This document shows positions 1-32,900 of a DNA stretch of 34,203 nucleotides, one piece after another. Numbering within the stretch: position 1 is the stretch's first letter; each line of letters opens with the position of its first letter. This DNA is from Guillardia theta CCMP2712 (taxonomy: Eukaryota > Protista > Cryptophyta): contig NW_005434599.1 in NCBI RefSeq assembly GCF_000315625.1, positions 314,070 through 348,272 of the forward strand. The letters are read 5' to 3'. Made by a program: the position numbers and the translations under genes. The notes below the pieces were generated by a model. The model made no database searches. It was not told the DNA's origin and worked only from the letters and a program-made list of their open reading frames with translations.

Positions 1-1370
1 ATCTCTTGACGAACTCCACTTGAATCTTGAAGCAGAGGCAATTAAGTGTTCCACTGTTAGCAAAAGTAGCCTGGTGCTTGATTGTTGTAGACGTGAATAC
101 CTTTCTCCTTCAAGAGATCAATAACTTGATCATATGCAGCTCTCACAGTCCTCTGAAAAACCTCAGGACTGTCTCCATATGGAATGTAGGACATCGTCAT
201 AAGGCATGATGAACTTCGGACAAGCTTTTGCCAGAATTTCCATTCTTTCTTCGAACAGTCTACGCCGTAAGGGAAAATGGAAATGGTGACTTCAGTTGCC
301 TTCTGAGGATTGCCAGCCGAGAAAGTCATTGTTGCACAGTCATAGTTGATCGTGATAACAAGGCGATGCTTCCCGTGAAGTTTGAAGATATCAATCCACT
401 CTTCGACAAGTTGAAGGAGGCCGAGACAATGTGTCCCATCTGGCAAACAGAACAGTTTGAATCTTTCGCACATCGCATGCTTCTCTTGTACTCTAACCCG
501 TGATATTTTTGGCATTGGAATAAAGCAGCCAGCCATGCTATCGTTTGCACGACAGAATCCTTGGTACTGCGATTTCGTTATACCGTTTGCTGTCAGGGCA
601 ACTGCTGCCTCTCGCGCGCTCGGCATCATTTGCCTGACCGCAGGTTTCAGGCAGTTTTGAAGCTCCTTATTCGTGGCAAGTTCATTTTTTATGACTGTCT
701 TGAAGGCTTGACTGCTCAGAATGCCTTCAAAGAACGTAAGGCTATCGTATTTCGAAGTTTTGCACTTCTTCTGCTTTCGAGGCCCCTCGGCCGCTTCCTG
801 TCCAGAGTCATCCTCACACTGGTGGTGAAATAGATCAGCAAAATGTCCCCATTTCACTCGACAATTGGCCTTGTGTGACGCAAAGTGCCGATCTACCTTC
901 TTCGTGACCACATCTAGAAGGTCCTCATCAGTGTCACCCTGGATCTTCTTCAGAATCGCTGTTTTCACTTTTGGATCTTTGATAGAATCGTAACAAGCCG
1001 GAATTGGTTCATCAGAGTCGGAAATAATCCCTTCGCGTATGGCTTCATCCACATGATGACTAAAACCTCTCTGCTCCTCATACTCTTGTAAGATTCGAAG
1101 CAACAACTCAGGAGATCTACCTGCATCTCAGGTGTTACAAAGATTTGAATTATACAAATAATCTCTTTTCAAACCTATGGCCTTCAGGCAAGCATTGACA
1201 TTAGGTTGTCCTTGCCATTTTCCTTGTTTATAGAGGAAGCCCGCTCGACTTGCCAGAGACTCCCAGGTGAGCAATTCATCGTCTTCCAGGGTGATCGTTT
1301 GTTTGCGACGTCTGCACGAACTTCCTTGCAAAGGTGGGGATGACGGATTTGATAGATTTGGTCCTGACAT
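1..1370 (-). mobile_element. Spliced gene for a putative RAG1/Transib-like DDE transposase, truncated by the window edge
   Basis: ORFs 1128..1370 and 57..1106 share a frame and are joined by removing a 54-bp GT-AG intron (1121-1174) that contains the TGA. The motif order AVALTANGITKSQY..G..P..RVQEK / VITINYD / PQKATEVTISIF / SSSCLMTMSY..GDSPEVF parallels the RAG1 core. The region is more AT-rich than the flanking host genes. Confidence 0.5.
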
Positions 1371-1487
1371 GGTTAATCAATGTTTTAATGTTCAAAATGC
1401 CAGGCCAAATTTCAAGATCCCACTGACATGTCTCTCAACTTGTGCCGTGGCGACTGGCCTGTGGAAAAAATTCAAATCCCTGAAATA

Positions 1488-1860
1488 GGGATGGGTGGGG
1501 AACAGGGGGGACTACCCTACCCCCTATTTGTGAAAGCACTAGCAGAAAAGGACCCGGTGACTTCATTCTTGTACCAAACCCAGAAACACAGTACACAATG
1601 AATTTGAATCAGTTACAAAATATTTTCGAACCTTAGTATTGAATTTCTAAGTCTTTTCTACTGTGTTTCCAATTTATATTTATTTTATGATTATCCGTAT
1701 CCTTCTAAAACGTTTTCGCAGCCTTAAAACATGTCGTCTGTTAAAGTTTCGAGGGGAGTGGGGTGGTCTTGAAGGTTACCGCCCATGACATTCAATACCC
1801 CACCCCCTATTACTAGATGATATGGGGGTAAAGGTGCTTCTGTGCGAGGGCAGTACCCGT
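1488..1860. repeat. G-tract/C-tract intergenic element, copy 1, including a canonical G-quadruplex motif at 1488-1510
   Basis: GGGATGGGTGGGGAACAGGGGGG. Shares TTCGAGGGG..GGGGTGGT and CAATAC..CACCCCC with 25220-25470. Confidence 0.5.
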
Positions 1861-1893
1861 ATTATGAGCAGTCAAAGTACGGGTCATTGAAAG

Positions 1894-2041
1894 NNNNNNN
1901 NNNNNNNNNNNNNNNNNNNNNNNNNNNNNNNNNNNNNNNNNNNNNNNNNNNNNNNNNNNNNNNNNNNNNNNNNNNNNNNNNNNNNNNNNNNNNNNNNNNN
2001 NNNNNNNNNNNNNNNNNNNNNNNNNNNNNNNNNNNNNNNNN
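1894..2041. other. Assembly gap
   Basis: Run of N. Confidence 0.99.
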
Positions 2042-2584
2042 CCTGCATGCTCCTGCTGCTTGTTGCTTGATTGCTTGACCCTTAGGCTGCTTGTCTGCGC
2101 GGCTTCGCGCTTGGGCTGGCGCTGCCGCGTCTGGGTGCCAGCAGTGCTGGTTCTTTTCGGGCTTGTGTTTTGTGTGTGATTGTGCAGCTTCTCGCTGTGG
2201 ACTGTGTGCCTGCCGGTTCAGCTTGTTCCTGCTTTGTTTTGCTTGAGGCACTTTTTACCTTCTGCCAGTAAATCCTATATCTTCAGGGCGTTTCATTTTG
2301 GACGTCCCCTTCTGCTGCATGTCACAGAGTCACCCCTCCTAGCGACTGTTGCTTGGCCCTTCCTGCTTGCCAGTCTGCGCGGCTTCGTCACGATGCAGAC
2401 GGTACCGTCGGTGGAGATGGCAAGCCTGAGGGATGAACACTTGAGGAGGCCCGAGTAGTCATGGGCGATGATACCCGGTGACCCAGCCCGGTGTTTGCGA
2501 ATCTTCTCCAACGCTCAGCGGCAACATGGAGCCAGGAGTCACGAGGTGAGTTGTGATGACGAGCGCGGACGGTCGAGAGCTGAC

Positions 2585-2790
2585 GAGTCAGGCGGCCCGG
2601 CCCGGTTGAGGCCCGGGCCGGCCCGGGCCCGGGGTGGCCCGCCCGGCCGGGAATCGGTGCACTCGGAATCCCCGACGGTGGCCAGGCTCTACTAGAAATG
2701 ACAGTGAAGTACCTTTACTCAAAGTTAAGTTAAAAATCAGTACGAGTACCCGGGCGGCCCGCCGCGGCTTTCCGTTGAGTAGGAGGAGGG
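2585..2790. repeat. GC-rich CCGG/CCCGGG island, copy 1
   Basis: Dense GGCCCGG/CCGGG words. The AGTACCTTTACTC motif near 2708 recurs as AGTACCTTTTACTC near 26060. Confidence 0.5.
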
Positions 2791-3012
2791 CCGTTGGTGA
2801 TGGCGGGGGGAGCGGGAGGGCAGCAGGTGAAGTTGCCAGCCCTGGCGCTTGGAAGGCGAGAGCATGGCAGCATGACAGCTCGAGACAAGCTCGAGCATGA
2901 CGAGCTCGCCAGCAGCATGCAGGAGGGACGGCGGGGGAAGTCGGAAGTGAGGATGAGAGGAGGGCATGGGAGAGCAACGGGAGCAGTGAGTGAGAGAAGC
3001 CATCGGCACTGC

Positions 3013-4464
3013 ATGGTGGATCAGTCTGTTTCCTCCCTCATGATAGGAAACGTTCCCAAGTACTACACAGTAAAAGTGACCCTAGAATCAGCTGTGGTTG
3101 TGATCGACGGGGAAAGCAAGGAGCGAAGTGTGAAAGTTTGCACCTCCATGGACGGAGTGACTTTCACGAGCACAAGCTGCAAGGTCTTGGAGGCAGACAA
3201 CGCTCTCTCGATCAACGAGACGTATATCTTTCATCCGCAAGGGAGTTTGTTGGGTTCATTTCTGTTAATTCGAGCACTCATGAGCCCTGTCAAGTCAGAG
3301 CAGGAAGAGGTTGCGATGGGGGTAGTGGATCTGTCAGGAGCGTCAAGCTCTGACGGGATCATTCGGATCCAACGAAAGCTGAAGAGCGAGGGAAGTAAGT
3401 TGCACGTCAGTGTGAACCTGAGCATCCAAGTGTTGCCGCGAAGCAAGTCCTTCTCCATCTCCTGGGGCTCGGAGTCAGATTCCATCTTCAGGCGATCAGG
3501 TTTCGCCGTCTCTTCGCGCGGGCTTGTTAGTACTCCCCAACCTTATCAGAAGCGCGGGCTGCCCAAGCACGTGAGCTTCTCGGACCTGAGGTTGGTTCGC
3601 AAGGTCGCAGAAGAAGCGGAGGGGTACGAGGTGTGGCGAGCGGTGGATGCGAACAAACGATGGTACACGGTCCGTCGGTTTCTGGTGACGAAGAAGCAGT
3701 GCCGTCAGATGCTGACGTCTTGTCTTTCTGGTCTCATCGATATGGAAGGTTTCCGATCTGTTGGGGTCTGCGACGCTTTCCTGGTCGGTCTGAACGTGAG
3801 TGTGGTGTTGGATGATGGCGATGGTGTCTATCTGCGAGAAGCAATACAGAAGAATGGAGCTCCGGCCGAGCATGTGACCTCTCTTATCCTGAAGCAAATC
3901 TTATCAGCCCTTCAGTACTTGCACGAACATCATTCGAGAATCCACAACGACGTTGACGCGAGGAATGTTGTGTGTTTGAGGAACGGAGAAGTCAGAGTCC
4001 GAGGTTTCTGTTACAGTCAGAAGTTGATCGGCACATCTCAAACTTTCTGTGGACCTTACCTGCATATGTCTCCCGAGCGGTTACTTGGGTTAGAATGCTC
4101 ATTTCCATCAGATGTGTGGAGCCTCGGCATACTCGCTTACGAGCTTGCAACGGGAAATTTGCCAGACAGCTATGTGCAGAACTCTTGTGCATCAAACATC
4201 TTAAACTTCAAGAATGTCGTCATCAACCAACCCAGTCCTTCAATCAAGGAGAACGCCAACATATCAAGTCAGTTTCGCCATTTCGTGGATTGTTGTTTGA
4301 AGAAGAACGCGCGCTCTCGTGCCACCATCTCAGAGTTGCTCGCTCATTCCTTTTGCAGTCGTCAAGACGCCTGGATCACGACGGTGGGAGCTTGGGTACA
4401 GACAGGACAGGCTGCTCATGGAAGGCCACACGAGAAGCGAGGCTCAGTTGTGACGCAGGGCTGA
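3013..4464 (+). CDS. C2-like domain plus MAP2K (STE7/MEK)-like kinase fold, probably a pseudokinase
   Basis: Intronless ORF, open from 2794, with likely start ATG 3013. The N-terminal beta-rich segment (INETYIF, MGVVDLS) is C2-like. Kinase C-lobe motifs are HMSPER, SDVWSLGI and FRHFVDCCLKK..R.T.SELLAH.F. The catalytic motifs are degenerate (HNDVDARN, GFC). Confidence 0.85.
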   Translation: MVDQSVSSLMIGNVPKYYTVKVTLESAVVVIDGESKERSVKVCTSMDGVTFTSTSCKVLEADNALSINETYIFHPQGSLLGSFLLIRALMSPVKSEQEEVAMGVVDLSGASSSDGIIRIQRKLKSEGSKLHVSVNLSIQVLPRSKSFSISWGSESDSIFRRSGFAVSSRGLVSTPQPYQKRGLPKHVSFSDLRLVRKVAEEAEGYEVWRAVDANKRWYTVRRFLVTKKQCRQMLTSCLSGLIDMEGFRSVGVCDAFLVGLNVSVVLDDGDGVYLREAIQKNGAPAEHVTSLILKQILSALQYLHEHHSRIHNDVDARNVVCLRNGEVRVRGFCYSQKLIGTSQTFCGPYLHMSPERLLGLECSFPSDVWSLGILAYELATGNLPDSYVQNSCASNILNFKNVVINQPSPSIKENANISSQFRHFVDCCLKKNARSRATISELLAHSFCSRQDAWITTVGAWVQTGQAAHGRPHEKRGSVVTQG

Positions 4465-4530
4465 CATGGAGGAGAGGGATCGAGAGGGGTGGAAAAATGT
4501 ATTTACTCGAGAGCAGCTTGCCCTCCTGGT

Positions 4531-5802
4531 CTACCCGTATTTGTCGGACTTGAGGCTTGACATTCGCTTCTGGCTCGCCTCCATCACTTTCTCCAAATGC
4601 CCAGAGGCTGACCGAGTTTCCGGCGAGCTGTAGGAGGGTCGAAGCAGCTCCGACGTCGCTTGCCCTACTAGATCGGTCCTGGCACCTGCGGCTCGTCCTG
4701 GAGTCGAGGATCCTTGTTTGATCAACATCTCGCTGACCAGCTTCGTCACAAACTCCGTCAGGTTGTGTCGCTCTTGCAGCTTTTCAAGGGCGCTTTGCTC
4801 TCGGCTCTGAGCATACAAGTCCCGCAGTCGCGCCTCTTGATCATGGATCAGCTTCTTAGCCTGTGACAGCTCGTTCTCCAAGTCGTTGATTCGCCTGTCA
4901 GGCGTCCCGCCCTTGACGGGCCCGGGCAGCTTCACGTTTCTCTCCAACACGTTGAGACGAGAGTCAGTCAGCGAGCGATGGTCCTGCAGCTGAGCCTCCA
5001 GCCGTGCGATCTCTTGCAGGTGGAGGTTGTGCAATGTCTTTCTATCCGTACACAACTCTTCGTACTTCTCGCTCAGCCTCTCGAACTCTTCCAGCTGCTC
5101 TCTGCAGCTCTCAGCAACTTTCTCATGTCCCTTCACTATCACATCAAGTTTCGCGCTCACGTTCTCCTTCTCGGTCTTGCAGTCGACGAGCTCAGACCGG
5201 CAGGCGCTCACCTGACTTCTCAGGTCTGCCAGCTTCTCATTCAGACCTCCGACCTGACCATCCAGCACTGTCAGCGCCTGCTGCTGAATCTGAACAGCCT
5301 CGCTCAGCCTGCGGAAACCTGACTCAGTCCATAGTCTCAGTCGCTGCACTGAATCCTCGGACGCTTGGGTCGAACCCTTCACCACGTTCAACGCATTTCT
5401 GAGCTCTGCGATCTCTGGGCCCAGTCTCTGCACTCCTTTGGCGACAAGGGTGAACTGATCTGACGTGTCAACTTTGAACCTGTTCATTTCTCCGCACAAG
5501 ACGTCGATCTCTTCCACCATGATCTGAGATAACGAGTCGATGACGCTGCCGAGGGATCTCATCTGCTCCTGCACTGACAACACCTCGCTCTTGAGCTGCA
5601 TGGCCTTCTCAAGCTTCTCAGACACCTGCTTGCGGAACTTGCGCAGATGCCTTGTTGAAACCAACTTCACTGGCGCGTTGCTGGCAAACGGACAGTTGGT
5701 AGTGGTGGCAATGATGCCTGCGTAGGGGTGATGCGAGATATCATGCTTCTGGCAACCTCGAGACAGGAGCTGGTTCAACTGAAATGGCCTGGCAAATGCC
5801 AT
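4531..5802 (-). CDS. Coiled-coil protein of unknown function (423 aa ORF; 5' end uncertain)
   Basis: Long ORF with E/L/Q/K-rich heptad pattern, convergent with the kinase gene. Confidence 0.7.
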   Translation of the reverse strand: MAFARPFQLNQLLSRGCQKHDISHHPYAGIIATTTNCPFASNAPVKLVSTRHLRKFRKQVSEKLEKAMQLKSEVLSVQEQMRSLGSVIDSLSQIMVEEIDVLCGEMNRFKVDTSDQFTLVAKGVQRLGPEIAELRNALNVVKGSTQASEDSVQRLRLWTESGFRRLSEAVQIQQQALTVLDGQVGGLNEKLADLRSQVSACRSELVDCKTEKENVSAKLDVIVKGHEKVAESCREQLEEFERLSEKYEELCTDRKTLHNLHLQEIARLEAQLQDHRSLTDSRLNVLERNVKLPGPVKGGTPDRRINDLENELSQAKKLIHDQEARLRDLYAQSREQSALEKLQERHNLTEFVTKLVSEMLIKQGSSTPGRAAGARTDLVGQATSELLRPSYSSPETRSASGHLEKVMEASQKRMSSLKSDKYG

Positions 5803-5974
5803 TGCTGATCGGACACGGGTTGCGAATAAATAGAGGAGGAAGAAAAAGAGAACGAGATGGCGATGGTGAGGGAGGAGAAGGAATTGAGGGGATACGGAAA
5901 GGGCTGACGAGGAAGAAGGGGTGCTTGTGTGGTTGAGTGGGGAAGAGAAGGGTAGGGATATGGAGGGAGTAGGA

Positions 5975-6290
5975 TGAGGAGGAAGGGAGGAGGAGAGGGA
6001 GGAGGAGGAGGGGGAGGATGTTCTAGTAGCGCATCACTTCGCCCGACATCATCTCATCCGTTGTTTTTCAATTGGGTAGGCCACCCACCAGTCCTAATCA
6101 CCGTGAGTCCAGCTAAAGGGATGGGGTGGGGTTATTCTGTCGGGGAATGGGAAACGGGAGGGAGAAGGGAGGGGGAGGGAGAAGGGAGGGGGGAGGGGGG
6201 AGGGAAAAGGGAGGGGGGAGGGAGAAGGGAGGGAGAGGAGAGGGGACGGGGATGGAAGAATAAGGCGAGTTGGGGAAGGGAAGGCAGAGA
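5975..6290 (+). repeat. Purine-rich (GGA/GGGA) low-complexity tract, interrupted by unique sequence
   Basis: Runs of G and A. Confidence 0.7.
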
Positions 6291-11018: not shown

Positions 11019-14000
11019 TCAACTATTTACATGCAGTCGATGAAAGCTCACCCAAGCATCTCCCTCCTGGTCTCTTTTCTCCTCTGCTGCATCGCTCGCC
11101 GGGTTACCATCCTTCCCCTCCGCCTCCGCGAACTTCTGTGCCACGTGCTCGAGGTGGGCGTAAAGCGTGAGGAGTGAGTGCTTGTTGAGCGGCTTGGTTC
11201 CTCCACCTGACAGCTCAGGGAACGAGAAGTAGCGCAGCTCCTCTGCGGTGAACGCTTCCCCTCCCTCCCCCCTCTCCCGGCCCTCCAGCTGCTGCAAGCT
11301 TGTGGCGAGAACAGCTTTCAGCCAGCAGGTGGAGGCCGCGGCTCCTTCCAGCGGCAGCGCGTTCACGATCGACTCGGTCAGATACTCGACCTGTCGCTTC
11401 AGCACCCGCACGTTCCTTCCCAGCAGCCTCGCGAGCTCAAGAGGATCCGAGCCCTCGTCCTGCTTGATGCTCTCCGCCACAAGGATGCCGTTGAGCTCAT
11501 CCTTCAGCTCAGCCAGATGGTGCGAGTGGACGCAAGAGCAGGAGAAGTTCTTCTGCTCCTGTCTCCTCCCCTGGGTCTCCCCTGCCTCTCTCAACCTGGC
11601 GAGGACGGCAGTCGCGTCGACCGCGCCATGGGCATCAGCCTCTTCGTCTCTGTGCTGGAGGCGAGGGCAGGAGGAGGAGGAGGAGGAGAGCTTCAGCTGC
11701 ATCATTTCTCGTTCCAAGCTCAGCATCTTCTCGTGCTGTTCAGTGAGGGTCTCTTGCAGGGACGTCACGTCGCTCATGAGGCTGGTGATGATCTCGTTCT
11801 TCTCCTGCAGCAGGCTCTCGCTCTTCGTCGCCTTCCTCGTCTCTGCTCTTATTCTCCTCTCAACTGCCGTCGGCAGACTGCGGAAGCGGCTCCTCATGCT
11901 AGCGGGCGACAGAGCGTTGCTCTCTTCATCCTCCGCCTCCTCGATCGTCACCTTGCGCACGATCCTCTCGAGGATGTTGGTCCACAACGTGTGCTCCTGC
12001 TCGAGCGCCGAGAGGTCCTCGAGGAAGCCATCTGCTAGCCGCCTGCTCCCCTTCACCTCCTCCAGCAGCCACGTGATGCCGCCGAGTAACTGTTTCTGCT
12101 CCTCCTCATCTCCCCCCCGCGACTTGGCAGCCTCCTGCTGCTCCCCCGACTCTCCTGCGCGGCGCTCACCAACTTCTTGGCATAGGCAGGAGATGCGGAG
12201 GAGTTCAACGGCCTCCTCTAACTCGCTCCTCACCGTCTCCTCCCTCTCATCCGCCTCCTGCTGCGCCTTGACCGCAGCAGTCAGACGAGACCGCAAGCCC
12301 TTCATCTCTTCAGCAGAGGTTCGCAGCTCCTCCTCCAGCTCGCCTGCTCTCCGAACCAGTCGCTCCTTCTCCCTCCTGGCTGCCCTCAGCTCCTTTAGGT
12401 CATCCGCTCTCTCTCTCCCCAGGGACGCGAGGGGAGAAAGCGTCTGCATCAGATTATCCAGACCAACCAGGAGAGACAACAGACTCTCTTCCTCCCTCCT
12501 CGCCTCCTCCTCCACTTCTTGTTCCTCCTCCCTTCTCCTCTCCACGACCATCACTCGCAGTTTTCCTACTTCTTCTTCCAGGCGATCGCATTGGGACACA
12601 AGCAAACTATTCTCATCCAGTACCTTTCCCAGCTGCTGCCTCACCTCCTCCAGCTCTCTGGCAGCTCTCTCCGCGTCTGCCGACTCTTTTCGTCGCGTCT
12701 CTTCCTGCTCGTCTGCCGCTGCTCGCAGGCGCGTGATCAAGGTCTCCGCTTGTTCCAGCTGCCGGCGAGTCTCGGCGAGCTCAGACGCCTGTTGCATCAA
12801 GCGCGAGTCGCTGAGTTGCTGGTGTGCGTGGCGGAGGAGGAGGAGGAGACGATCAGAGACGTTCAGCTCTCCTCGTCCTCCTGCAAGTCTCCACTGAGTC
12901 TGATAGCTGACTAGAATCTCAACCATCGCCTCTCGCTCTTCCTCCACTTCCCTTAAGCGTCTCTTTGCACTTTCGAACCCGCGGACAAGGGATGCAACTT
13001 TCGCCCAGACGTCCAAACCATCATCCCTCTCCCCCCCCGTCTCCGCGACCAACAACAGCCTCAGCTCTCGCACCATCTTCTCCAGTTTTGCAGTCACCTC
13101 CAGCCATCGCTCAGCACATGGCAGAGAAGCTGAAAGGAGTCGGTCGAGCGCTTCCATCACCTCGAGCGTCTCCTCCTGCCATACCCCCACACTTGTCGTC
13201 ACTTGTCTCGCCTCTCCCTCCAGGTCTTGCGCCACTGTCACCATATCACGAAGCATCTGCCAGCAGGCCGCGTCGTCGCGTCGCATGTTCGACTCAACTT
13301 GCAGCATCACGTCGTCAATCTCCTCCTGCGATTGGTTCAGCTCGTCAAGGATGTTCTGAGCGAACGGAAGTGCCGCCCCCACCCATCGCTCCTTCCTGCC
13401 CTCTGCCATGGCGAGCAGCCCCAGCAGCTCGTCGTGGCTCTCCTTCCACTCGTTGTTCATGTCAGCGAACACTCGCAGGCAGTCGCTGCGCACATCCGTG
13501 AGCTCCGTCAGCATCTCCTCGCACGTTGCTCTGCTTGTCTCCCTCGCTCGCTCTTCCTCCCCCACCAGCTCCATCAACTTCTTCATCTTCTCACTGTCTG
13601 ACGCTGCCAGTTTCATTTCCTCCTGCAACCTCCTTGCCTCCTCATCGCCTCGCTTCGCTGATTCCTTCGCCTCCTCCAGCACAAGGCTAAGAGACTTGAG
13701 GTCTGCCGCGACGTCAAGGACCCGCACGAGGATGTCGGCGACTCTTCCTCCTCTTCGAGCCTCCAGCTGCTCCATGAGCTCATCAAGATGTTTCACTTGC
13801 TCTTCTATCACCCGCATCTCCTCTTGCATGCGTCGCATGTGAGCAAGCTTGCTTTCTTCCGACCTTATCCTCCTACTCAGCTCCTCCTTGGCCTGCCCCA
13901 GCTCTTCCTTGGCCTGCCCCAGCTCTTCCTTGGCCTGCCCCAGCTCTTCCTTGGCCTGCCCCAGCTCCTCCTTGGCCTGCCCCAGCTCTTCCTTGGCCTG

Positions 14001-17000
14001 CCCCAGCTCCTCCTTGGCCTGCCCCAGCTCTTCCTTGGCCTGCCCCAGCTCGCTCTTGAGCATCGCCTCCTTGCTCTTGACCTTTCTGAGCTCGTCTTTC
14101 TCCAGCAATTGACCAGCTTGACTTTCCTGCAGCTCAAGTCTCATGATTTCCAGCTCTCGCCGCATGCTCGCCGCCTCCGCCTCCTTCTCCGCCAATTTCT
14201 GTTTCTCCTCCATCACCCACGTCTCCAGCTCTTGCATGCGGACCTCAGAAGCTTCCATGCAATCTCGCGAGCTCGCAGCTTGCTGAGCTTGCAGCGCCAA
14301 CAACTTGAACAACAACCTGCCCCATCGCCAACAGACTTTCTCCTCCCTCTTCTCCTCCCTCTTCTCCTCTCGCCTCCCCTTCAGCAGCTTGTCAAACTGT
14401 GCGGCCTGACTTCGAGCTTCCTCTTCGTAGGCAGACTGAAAACTTGAAAGCTGCTGAGAGGCGGCGAGGAGAGCGCGTGAGACGTCAAGGCCGTCGCTCC
14501 TGACCGCCACGAGTCTCCTCTTCATAGCAGCCACAATCGACGACAAGCCAGCAGGAGCACAGCCGCACGCAGCCCTTGCAGACAGGATCTCGTTCCTCAG
14601 ACATCGCAGTTGTTCCTCAAGCTTTTCAGCACTGTCGAGGCTCAGCTGGATCTCCTGGTGGACTTTGTGCTCCTCCTCTCGGGCCTCAACTTGACAGCCA
14701 TGCACGAGGCTTGTCGCTTCCTCAAGTTGGAGGAGCATCGAGAAGACGGTCTGCGCTTTCTCGTCGCGCCCCTCCAGCAGCATCGCAAGGGTCAGGGAGC
14801 AGGTCGATGAGAGTCGATCGCAGTCAGACAGCAGCTGCTCGATCTTGAGCTCCTCCTTCTTCGAGGTTTCTTGCTGTTCACCTCGCAGCATCTCAACAGT
14901 CGCAGCTTGTCCTCTTGCTTCGGCTTGCAGCTCCTCCCTCCTCTTCCTGCTCAGCTCAACTTCTTTCAGACATCTCCTCATCTTCCCTTCTATAAGTTCA
15001 AGCGCGTCTAGCGTTACTTCCTCGCACTCCTGCCCCTCTTGAACCAGCTCGACAACATCGCGCAAGTCAAGGCCCTCACGGCACAAGTCCTTCAGTTGCA
15101 ATGCCATTGCTCGAGCATGCAGCAGCTGCGACTCAGCATGCCGTCGCTTCCTCGTCTCTCTGTGCGACTTCATCAGGTGGAAGTGCTGCTGTAAACTCAT
15201 CCGATTCTCCGCAGCCTCTTGCAGCTTCTCGTTCCTCTTGCACGTTTCAGCCCTTCGCCCCTCAAGCTCCTCCACCTGCCGTCTCGCCACCTCCAGCTGG
15301 TCTCCCATCTTCCTCGCCACCTGCTCGAGCTGCTCGAGCTGCTCCTCCACTCGTGTCTGCACGTGCTCTTGTTCTGCTTGCCGAGTCGCCACGAGCTGAG
15401 CCTGCAAGGCCATCTCCCCCGCCGCCCGCTGAGACCCTCGTTGAGCCTGCTCAAGCTGCAAGGTGACCCGCACCAGCTTCTGTTTCTCCTCTGCCCTCTC
15501 CTCTTCTCGATTCTTCAATGCCTCCCTCGCGAGCTTCAGTTCCGCCTGTGACGTCTGCAACTTCAGCTGCAGTTCCTCCATACCATGAGCTCGGGCCCTC
15601 TGCTGCTCCTGCGCTGCTTCGGATTGTCGTCGCAACGAGCTCAAGCTTTCTTTCACCTCTCCTTGCATCTGCAGGCACATCTCGGCGATCTTGAGACTCT
15701 CTTGCTTCACCTGCCAGGCTTCTCGCGCCCCGTCTGACCTCAACTTCTCCAGCCTCATTCCCAGCCTGTCGCATCGCATCCTCATCGGCCCGCACGTCTC
15801 GCTCAACCTGCACATCAACTCGTCCACCTCCGACACTTGACGCAGCAACTTGTCAACTTGATCGTCTCCATGTTCCAGCAGCTGCTGCCTCGCATCAGTT
15901 CTCTCTCCTCCTCCAACTTCACTGCACCTTCTCTTGCGCCTCTGCTCGTCGTCCTTCCTGCGTCAACCCGCTCGCAATCTCTGAGCTCAACATGCGCAAC
16001 TCGAGAAACTCCCGGGAGAGGACGCGAAGACTCCTTCTGCTCTCGTCCTTGATGACCTGCCATGCGGTAAGCTGCTTCATCGCCCTCTTTCCCTTCTCCT
16101 CTCATGCCTCGTGGGTTTCTCGCAGTCTCTCGCAGTTTCTCCTTTCCTGCTGCAGCTCCTCCCTGCTCCTCTCCAGCTCACGCGACAGTCTCTCGCTTTC
16201 CTCGTGCGACACCTGCACCATCGTCAGGGGCGGCAAGCAATCAGCAAGCAGGAGACCCTCGTCTGCTCAATCGCTCGTCTGCTCTCTTGCGTCAAACTTT
16301 CGTTCCGGTGCATCACAGCCACCAGCTGCTCCATCACGTCGCGCATCTGCTTCTCCAGCAGACCCTCCATGCTCTTCACCTTCTGCTTCAGACCCTCTGC
16401 CTCCTGCACCCACATGACCTCGTTAAACTCCCGCACCAGTTAGCACCTTGCTGTCATGCTTCGCCTTCCCATCCAGCTCATTGCGCGCATCTTCCAACTC
16501 TCTGAAGACAAGGATAAGGAGAATGCAAGTCAGCATCGCCTCCTTCCTCTACCTGATCAGTCGCTCCTTCTCCTCGTTTTCTCGCGTCACGACCTCCACA
16601 TTTCTCTTTGCCATCGCTGCCTCTTCCTTGGCTCTCTTCGCCTCTACCGCGTATTTTTCCTTCACTCCGATCAGCTCGTCCAAGAAAGCTTTTGCACCTC
16701 CCGAAGCCGAACTCGCACCAACCTGCATGGAGTCATTGGGAGGGTACAGGAACACAAGAAAGAAGGGCCCGAGAGAGGAACAGGAAAAGAAGCAGGATTA
16801 GGAGTAGGAGTAGGCCTAAGTAGGAGTAGGAGTAGGAGGAGCAGGAGTAGGGGTAGGAGCAGGAGTAGGGGTAGGGGTAGGAAGGGGTAGGGGAGTGCAG
16901 CTTGCATCTACTTGGAGTTGAAGACGATTTATGCGATCTCTCTGCTCGGATATCGTCTTGTCTCTGTGCTCGAGCTCTTCCTCGGATTGCTGCAATTGAT

Positions 17001-29979: not shown

Positions 29980-32900
29980 ATGCTTCAAGAAGACCCCGGC
30001 ATTATGCTGTCGAATCGCTCGGCAAACATGGATCGGGTCGAGGCTACCGGGCCCGCAAAAGGTTTCCGGGCTCGTCGCGTTGCGTTCCGATCGAGAATGA
30101 AGAATCGAGTAGCAAGGCAAGAACGAGGAGGAAGAGAAAGTGGTGATGGTGGTGTCTGAAGAGAAGGAGAGGAGGGGGGGGGGGTGGGGGGGGAGGAGGA
30201 GGAGAAGGCGCAGAGTCTTTGCTGAGNNNNNNNNNNNNNNNNNNNNNNNNNNNNNNNNNNNNNNNNNNNNNNNNNNNNNNNNNNNNNNNNNNNNNNNNNN
30301 NNNNNNNNNNNNNNNNNNNNNNNNNNNNNNNNNNNNNNNNNNNNNNNNNNNNNNNNNNNNNNNNNNNNNNNNNNNNNNNNNNNNNNNNNNNNNNNNNNNN
30401 NNNNNNNNNNNNNNNNNNNNNNNNNNNNNNNNNNNNNNNNNNNNNNNNNNNNNNNNNNNNNNNNNNNNNNNNNNNNNNNNNNNNNNNNNNNNNNNNNNNN
30501 NNNNNNNNNNNNNNNNNNNNNNNNNNNNNNNNNNNNNNNNNNNNNNNNNNNNNNNNNNNNNNNNNNNNNNNNNNNNNNNNNNNNNNNNNNNNNNNNNNNN
30601 NNNNNNNNNNNNNNNNNNNNNNNNNNNNNNNNNNNNNNNNNNNNNNNNNNNNNNNNNNNNNNNNNNNNNNNNNNNNNNNNNNNNNNNNNNNNNNNNNNNN
30701 NNNNNNNNNNNNNNNNNNNNNNNNNNNNNNNNNNNNNNNNNNNNNNNNNNNNNNNNNNNNNNNNNNAGAGGATCTAGCTTGGATTCCTGGTCGGCAAACA
30801 GTAAGGTAGGAAACGAGCAAAAATCTGAAGTTCACCACGTTCATATCCGGAAAGTTGCGGGCTCTATGCCCGATCAACGTAACAGGGTGCGCCCACCAAA
30901 CCAGGCTTAGCGTTCCGGGATAGATACAAAAAAAATCCTCAGAACCACACTCCAATGATGTAAAACAGAATGTGGTGATTCATTTCTCCAATTCCATTCA
31001 GAGACATTCTGTGGTGGGGGGGAGGAGGAGGAGGAGGAGGCACGAGTCTTTGCTGAGTCTGTGGCAGGTGGTTCAAGCAGACTCGTGATATCAGCTTCTT
31101 CAATATGGATGAGCTCCAGCGAGGAATCTCCCCGAACATGGTGGCGTCCATGATGAGCCACGACAGGTGCGCTGGTTTGGATGAGTGTACAGACGATGAT
31201 GATGATGACGATGACGATCGATGACGATGATGATGACGATGACGACGGTATAGGTTGCTCGGGTCCCTTCCGCCATCAGAAGAATTCCTCAAAGAAGGTC
31301 TGCAAGCGTTGGACTAGATCGTGATACTGGATATAATACTGATGGAGGAGGAGGAGGAGCAAGAGAGGAGGAGCATGATGATGATGATGATGACGACGAT
31401 GGTGATGATGATGATGATAATTATGATGGTCCAGGCATTGTAGAGAAAAGAAGCCAGGAGAAGAAGTGGCAAGAGAGGAGGATTATCCTGACATCAACAC
31501 ACATCATCTTGACAACGCAAGGGTCGGACATGATCAAAGACAGCATCTTTCTGCGAGATGTCTCCCTTGCTCGGTCTCTTCTCTCCTCTCAGTGAGTTGT
31601 CGATGACTTCACTACAGGTCAGTGAGCCACCTCGACGGTCATCGGTTTGACCTGCTGGACCGAATGAAAGAGCATGAGGAGGAGAGGGAAATCGAGTGCG
31701 GGCAATCGCAGAACGGAGGATCGTTCAGAGGCAAAGTCAAACAGGTCGCGCACGTCGACAGCTTCACGTTCGAAGTTCACACGAGGGAAGAGAGTGAGAG
31801 CTGCGGGAGGGTCTACGTCTTCCGCAGCTTTGACGAGAAGGAGACAGACGACTGGGTCAAGATGATCGACGAGCAGGCGAAGCTCTCTATGGATAGCGCT
31901 CTACACGACAGGCTCGGAGAGTTCGAGAGGATGCGCTACAAGATCGCCATGTTCTACGACAGCAACCCAGTGCAGAGCGTCGTCGCCTTCCTCATCACCA
32001 TCAACTTCTTGGCTAACGCGGCGCAGTCGGAGCTCCTTCCTAAGGAAGGCAGCAGCATGGCGAACTTCTTCGCTGTGCTCGACGATCTCTTCACGATCCT
32101 CTTCACGATCGAGCTGGGGCTCAACCTCATCTCTCACTGGTTCTGGCCCTTCATCTCCGACGGCTGGTCCGTCTTCGACTTCGTCATCGTCTCCATCTCC
32201 CTCATCGCCATGATTGTCGGCAACCTCCCGGGCGTCAAGTCGCTTCGCCTCATGCGAGCCTTCCGCGTCCTCCGCCTCTTCGGCCGCCTGCAGTCGCTGC
32301 GGCAGATTATCACCGCACTGACTCACTCCATCGTCCCCGTCCTGAACGCGTTCCTCATCATGCTCCTCGTCACTTGCATCTACGCCATCCTCGCCGTCAA
32401 CTTCTACAGCGACCGGAGCCCCGAGTTCTTCGGCTCTTTTCTCGCGCCTGCTTCACCCTCTTCCAGGTCTCCCTCCCTCCCTCCCTCCCTCCCTCCAGTC
32501 CTCCCTACCTCCCTCCCTACTCCATTCCTCCCTCCCTCCCCTCATCTCTCCTCCAGGTCTGCACGGGCGACGGCTGGGCGAGTGAGATCGCTCGTCCAAT
32601 CTTCCATGACGGCAGTGGAGGAGACGGGAAAGATCACCTGGGGCTGGACGGGAATGTCGCGTTGTTCTTCGTCTCCTTCATCGTTATCGTCGGTTGGACC
32701 CTCCTCCAGGTCTCCTCTAGTCTCCTCTCGTCTCGTTTCGTCTCTTCTCCTCTCCTCCCCTCCCCTCCCTCCCTCTCTCTTTCTTTGTCTCAATTTTACT
32801 AGTTCTGTTTCTCTGTCCCCTCCTTCCTCTCTTCCCTCTTTCATGTCTTCTGCAGGTCGTCGTTGCCGTTCTCCTTGACAACTTCACCGCCGCAGCAGAG

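Follow-up and report, generated by a model that had tools for sequence, protein, structure and literature searches.

Two groups of transposases are the closest described relatives of the element analysed here. HzTransib of Helicoverpa zea (PDB 6PQN, 6PQX) is a transposase that works alone, without a partner protein, whereas RAG1, the protein that cuts antibody genes in vertebrates, and the RAG-like transposons (mouse and zebrafish RAG1; amphioxus BbRAGL/ProtoRAG, PDB 6B40) are paired with RAG2, a six-bladed kelch propeller with a PHD finger that reads H3K4me3. [quoted passage not shown] RAG-like elements had mostly been regarded as an animal matter, but this is out of date: a RAG-like transposon in the pelagophyte alga Aureococcus anophagefferens (AanRAGL), as well as Transib relatives in bacteria, fungi, plants and ctenophores, were published in 2022 (Tao et al., PMC9435367). 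AanRAGL was found by sequence search and possesses a true RAG2-like gene in the same direction, 5-bp TSDs and asymmetric CAC-type terminal inverted repeats (TIRs).

Here, we analysed a 34,203-nt stretch of Guillardia theta CCMP2712 DNA (hereafter the window; positions 314070-348272 of the contig C75 in an 87.1-Mb assembly with 669 contigs). A preliminary description based on the sequence alone had proposed an intron-containing, divergent RAG1/Transib-like transposase at window 1-1370, in a probable algal genome. G. theta is indeed a cryptophyte alga, and a relative of the protein is named by NCBI as GUITHDRAFT_142617. In the following, C numbers are contigs of this assembly, L numbers are extracted loci and X numbers are RNA sequencing runs.

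The window contains a defective copy of a repeated element

The gene described previously is real: the minus strand of window 57-1370 encodes all five motifs in the proposed order, with the Asp of LVITINYDCA at 339-341. The parts of this copy are as follows.

1-22: sequence unlike the element, a second breakpoint of this copy; it does not match L015 2670-2691, and the 4.4 kb further left (L011 5638-10000) read N.
23-74, plus strand: a 52-bp remnant of the 3' part of a partner gene, gene B (coding for NLEAEAIKCSTVSKSSLV); the rest of gene B and the left end of the element are missing.
74-75: internal deletion joint with 1 bp of microhomology; the 1568 bp removed are the end of gene B, the spacer and codons 415-820 of gene A.
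57-1120, minus strand: exon 2 of gene A as it stands in this copy; 75-1120 are authentic coding sequence (residues 66-414: N-terminal region, DNA-binding/dimerisation part, pre-RNase H and the first half of the RNase H domain), 60-74 code for 5 foreign residues, and the stop is at 57-59.
339-341, minus strand: codon of the first catalytic Asp candidate, D326 of the 820-aa full-length protein.
1121-1174, minus strand: 54-nt GT..AG intron.
1175-1370, minus strand: exon 1 of gene A (65 codons plus 1 nt), with the ATG at 1368-1370.
1371-1893, minus strand: upstream region of gene A and the subterminal part of the right end of the element; about the last 60 bp, including the terminal ...CCCAATATG, fall into an N gap at 1894-2041, as the right end in other copies lies 58 bp beyond this point.

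The two exons join in frame, and the splice joint (L015 5355 to 5410) was present in raw RNA reads of run X19 (3 reads, 2 starts) and in contigs of two other runs, X2 (depth 480) and X8. The strand of the RNA reads (first mate on minus) does not fit the usual dUTP convention for a minus-strand gene; we left this uninterpreted and relied on the GT..AG direction. In contigs of runs X1 and X2, a 109-bp stretch upstream of gene A (L015 5847-5955, corresponding to about window 1610-1718) was skipped, but this is a length variant of the element and not a GT..AG intron.

Further genomic copies, which had been named in advance as something to look for, were found: window 1-1893 matches at least 25 places in the genome. 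Window 75-1893 equals C242:5372-7197 at 99% and window 23-75 equals C242:3752-3804 (L015 2692-2744) at 100%, so that 1568 bp present in C242 and C9 are missing from the window. Since the same joint (L015 2743 to 4312) occurs in a contig of the independent run X2 at depth 46, the deletion is real and not an assembly slip. The window copy encodes 419 aa, of which the first 414 are identical to the 820-aa protein of C9. It keeps only the first Asp and cannot encode an active enzyme, and its value is that of a pointer to the family. The second Asp and the Glu, which had been expected just left of the window and whose absence had been put forward as a refutation, were deleted from this copy, but are present in full copies elsewhere as D440 and E747. 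The interpretation offered in the preliminary description is only partly supported.

The intact element carries two genes

A full, gap-free copy of 4778 bp is located at C9:152417-157194 (locus L015, positions 1418-6195). Further full copies are on C242 and C211, whereas C80 (1.9 kb), C322 and C492 hold shorter internal-deletion derivatives with both ends. The borders are sharp and identical in all copies, reading CATACCGGGCAG... on the left and ...CCCAATATG on the right. Gene A is on the minus strand (exon 1 at L015 5410-5607, exon 2 at 3091-5355) and encodes 820 aa; gene B is on the plus strand (L015 1729-3000) and encodes 423 aa. The two genes are tail-to-tail, about 90 bp apart. At the start of gene B (L015 1774-1836), three tandem copies of a unit of about 20 nt encode PTIPRPSN repeats, and the conserved part of the protein starts after them.

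We considered whether the A-B pairs might be a host gene family, domesticated or never mobile. The lack of detectable TSDs (see below), the purifying selection on gene A (dN/dS of 0.20 over 705 codons between the C9 and C65 subfamilies), the many open frames and the spliced transcript could be read in this way. However, near-identical copies (99-100%) sit in unrelated flanks with sharp common borders, internal-deletion derivatives retain both ends, the short inverted ends are conserved across organisms, and the GC content of window 1-2000 (0.39-0.46) is lower than that of the host DNA to the right (0.52-0.60). We therefore regard this possibility as very unlikely, although transposition itself was not observed.

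Gene A is predicted to have a RAG1-type fold

A sequence-profile match to RAG1 or Transib, the lack of which had been named beforehand as evidence against the proposal, was not obtained. Pfam and PDB sequence searches with the window ORF, the full protein, a 13-sequence profile and each relative gave no RAG1/Transib hit. Pfam RAG1 (PF12940) also found nothing in the six-frame translated genome, but this is weak evidence, as the control genomes gave nothing either; the newer domain models PF26100, PF26101 and PF26104 were not part of these searches. Only 21 relatives exist among 1.84 billion representative proteins. Together with its repeat status and the low dN/dS, this shows that the gene is not a chance ORF.

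The other part of the same test, the fold, gave a clear answer. The AlphaFold model built from the 13-sequence alignment had a pLDDT of 75.6 and a pTM of 0.72, with residues 170-757 mostly at 80-95 (757-aa numbering; add 63 for the 820-aa protein). The top 49 Foldseek hits in the PDB were all RAG1, HzTransib or BbRAGL (E 4e-9 to 2.5e-5), and rank 50 was Hermes at E 0.03. The match covers the whole RAG1 core, i.e. dimerisation/DNA-binding, pre-RNase H, RNase H, ZnC2, ZnH2 and C-terminal domains in one chain. Two further searches agreed: ESM Atlas features gave RAG1 clusters at 0.95, and the Atlas shape search gave RAG1 and RAG1_RNase_H clusters.

To examine the candidate active site and the zinc-binding residues, which had likewise been proposed as a check, we inspected the alignment of the relatives, whose mean column identity is 23%. 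D263, D377, C398, C401, H653, H659 and E684 (757-aa numbering) are invariant wherever a relative covers them, apart from one aberrant C-terminus; the first Asp is invariant in 7 of 7 relatives that cover it. In the model, the first Asp lies on the first strand of the RNase H part (strand E255-265), the second just after the fourth strand and the Glu at the start of a late helix. The spacing is D-114-D-21-CxxC...H-6-H-25-E; the catalytic triad candidate is D326, D440 and E747 and the candidate split zinc site is C461/C464 plus H716/H722 in the 820-aa protein. In mouse RAG1 the spacing is D600-108-D708-19-C727xxC730...H937-5-H942-20-E962. The equivalence of residues with RAG1 rests on fold, order and spacing; no residue-by-residue superposition was made. 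The split zinc site agrees with that of RAG1/Transib, with a CxxC about 20 residues after the second Asp and two His about 20 residues before the Glu.

An alternative would be that gene A belongs to another RNase H-fold transposase superfamily (P element, hAT or a bacterial IS type) and resembles RAG1 only in the shared DDE fold. The next fold neighbours were the P element at 11.4, and ISCth4 and Hermes at about 8, while RAG1, HzTransib and BbRAGL scored 6-11 Z units higher and aligned over about 425 residues, including the pre-RNase H, ZnC2 and ZnH2 parts, which the others lack. As the positions of the CxxC and HxxxxxH are also those of the RAG1/Transib split zinc site, we consider this alternative very unlikely.

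Gene B is linked to gene A and has a tentative BAH-like domain

The kelch-type RAG2-like neighbour that had been suggested as a test was not found: a linked convergent gene does exist, but it had no Kelch or other Pfam hit, its model has mixed helix/strand content, and nothing suggests a kelch propeller. It is nevertheless a real, conserved gene. A 433-aa homologue (50% identity) and a 383-aa homologue (23% identity, E 3e-23) lie on the metagenome contigs L049 and L017, each tail-to-tail with a gene A homologue. Within the G. theta genome, profile searches found 63 gene A and 66 gene B matches. Comparing their coordinates by hand, we found A and B adjacent and convergent at 24 loci: C9, C47, C242, C31, C340, C17, C56, C19 (twice), C154, C285, C72, C307 (twice), C100, C105, C282, C296, C276, C389, C319, C113, C497 and C560. 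By bit score these fall into about ten subfamilies, and at least 14 gene A frames are open over 750-1050 aa; the sequences, ends and TSDs of the subfamilies were not compared, 18 of the genomic loci being represented by their coordinates only. Gene B homologues with open frames of 396 and 384 aa also occur without a gene A match nearby (C8:1178704-1179768 and C320:7777-8781) and may be solo or domesticated copies.

The gene B model is poor (pLDDT 35, and about 60 for residues 118-195). Even so, residues 80-234 matched only BAH domains: the best Foldseek hit was Sir3 (E 1.7e-4), and the top 50 rows were essentially all BAH. Language-model features of the distant homologue P0023 (residues 40-215) hit BAH clusters at 0.94 with 206 shared features, whereas the Atlas features of the whole G. 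theta protein gave no usable hit. Pfam BAH (PF01426) hit neither the protein nor its loci, and in the genome only host genes. These results leave the presence of a BAH beta-barrel undecided, and we assign the BAH-like domain tentatively, as probable but not shown. Compared with the BAH-domain chromatin readers Sir3, ORC1, MTA1, DNMT1, EBS/SHL and ASI1, gene B lacks a Pfam BAH hit, and its C-terminal half (about 240-423) has no recognised fold; we found no paper describing a BAH protein encoded by a transposon of this superfamily.

Instead of being a subunit of the transposase, gene B could be a passenger or a regulator, e.g. a chromatin-bound repressor or a factor protecting the element from silencing, that acts without binding the gene A product. 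This would be in line with the gene B frames without a neighbouring gene A and with HzTransib working alone. A complex prediction of the A core (166-757) with B (60-423) gave no answer (score 0.00, alignments not used, partner fold uncertain) and is no evidence either way. On the other hand, the strict tail-to-tail linkage at 24 loci and on two distant metagenome elements, over divergence down to 23% identity, is the pattern of RAG1L-RAG2L, which act as a complex (PMC9435367). We consider a role without binding to the gene A product less likely, but it is not excluded.

The element has short CAT-type ends and no detectable target-site duplication

TIRs and a 5-bp TSD had also been suggested as criteria. 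The terminal 8 nt form an imperfect inverted repeat with 6 of 8 identical (CATAYYGG): CATACCGG on the left and CATATTGG when the right end is read inward. The same two octamers end the L049 element (positions 127 and 4745), and the metagenome element L016 ends with CATACTGG, showing that the ends are conserved in elements of two other organisms whose proteins are only 45-50% identical (L049 at both ends, L016 at one end). They begin with CAT and not with CAC, and no longer TIR was found. In L016, the terminal motif occurs twice in the same direction, as CATACTGG at the end (position 88) and as CATACCGGG 88 bp inside (position 176). The internal copy is followed by an 18-nt spacer and GGCACC, just as at the G. 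theta left end. Since this shared bipartite pattern of a 9-mer, an 18-nt spacer and GGCACC proved to be an internal copy in L016, we do not claim an RSS-like 12/23 structure; a second conserved block with unequal spacing is only hinted at, and no bipartite heptamer/nonamer-type end could be shown.

No direct repeat of 2-10 bp flanks any of the five G. theta copies with both ends, nor L049, at any offset within 6 bp (0 of 6 elements). This is unexpected for the superfamily and remains unexplained. One possible cause is that the flanks of 99-100% identical 4.8-kb repeats were mis-joined in an old assembly, although this fits poorly for the 1.9-kb C80 derivative. An apparent empty site for the C242 copy in a paralogous repeat was not clean, because about 71 bp beside it are replaced. 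Several insertions (right flanks of the copies on C492, C560, C242 and C9; loci L035, L037, L030 and L031) are followed by GC-rich DNA full of CTGAC/GTCAG/CCGTGAC palindromic motifs, and most right flanks start with CGG or CCG, which may reflect a target preference or another repeat family.

Comparison with known systems and interpretation

We conclude with high confidence that window 23-1893 is a defective, internally deleted and left-truncated copy of a cut-and-paste DNA transposon of about 4.8 kb, whose gene A is a very divergent member of the RAG1/Transib transposase superfamily. Our analysis shows the repeat status, the deletion, the splicing, the fold match, the conserved residues and the conserved A-B pairing, whereas the chemistry and the role and binding of gene B are inferred. 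By analogy with HzTransib and RAG, a dimer of A would bind the two ends, nick at the CATA border, form a hairpin on the flanking DNA to free the element and insert the free 3'-OH ends into a target. Gene B would be an accessory subunit or targeting factor, in the position that RAG2 holds in RAG-like transposons but unrelated to it, that through its BAH-like domain ties the enzyme to nucleosomes or to a histone mark, or regulates it.

Compared with HzTransib, the G. theta protein shares about 11-14% identity without a HMMER match, has about 230 extra N-terminal residues and a longer stretch between the second Asp and the His pair, and its element carries a second gene, CAT ends and no observed 5-bp TSD. 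Compared with RAG1 and the ProtoRAG-type transposons, whose two-gene layout it shares (PMC9435367), the partner is a 423-aa protein with a tentative BAH-like domain, and no RING or zinc-finger N-terminus was detected. AanRAGL is likewise a RAG1-superfamily transposon with a linked second gene in a unicellular alga, so that a protist RAG1 relative is not new in itself. The G. theta family, however, has none of the AanRAGL features listed above, and Guillardia is not mentioned in the supplements of that paper that we examined. The searchable literature links neither Guillardia nor cryptophytes with Transib or RAG1-like genes, and it links no BAH partner with Transib. We read the family as a very divergent representative of the RAG1/Transib kind with a different partner gene.

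It is possible, but tentative, that G. theta and related uncultured organisms carry a third architecture of the superfamily: a transposase too divergent for sequence profiles to find, permanently paired tail-to-tail with a BAH-type chromatin reader instead of RAG2, with CAT-type 8-bp ends and possibly no TSD. This would mean that a RAG1-type transposase recruited a chromatin-reading partner at least twice independently, and that the two-gene layout is older or easier to reach than thought. How a single-gene Transib became the two-gene RAG transposon, and then the V(D)J recombinase, is an open question, and RAG2 has been the only known partner so far. A separate lineage in which a RAG1-fold enzyme is genetically bound to a different presumed chromatin reader provides an independent case to compare, and raises the questions whether the partner is needed for cleavage, whether it steers insertion to certain chromatin and which surface of the enzyme it uses. 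The finding also shows that sequence searches for RAG1/Transib miss deep branches that structure prediction recovers. Since surveys of more than 680,000 assemblies were done by sequence search (PMC9435367), the known range of the superfamily in protists is probably understated.

Environmental relatives and neighbouring sequences

A search for related loci with the single protein gave only two near-identical metagenome contigs, L050 and L051 (JGI Ga0172376_10035653 and Ga0172367_10057892), which carry gene A at 95-96% protein identity to the G. theta copy. A very close relative of this element therefore occurs in nature. In L050, the terminal CAT reads AAA.

The C242 copy sits inside another repeat, which also occurs left of the window on C75, and a 309-aa frame that looks like a reverse transcriptase lies directly beside it (L012 7221-8150, minus strand). 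To the right of the N gap, the window contains ordinary host genes, among them a protein kinase, a coiled-coil protein and an ion-transport protein. The protein kinase is encoded at 2794-4464 (plus strand) and the ion-transport protein at 31622-32878 (plus strand), while a 1609-aa open frame with no Pfam family is at 11019-15848 (minus strand).
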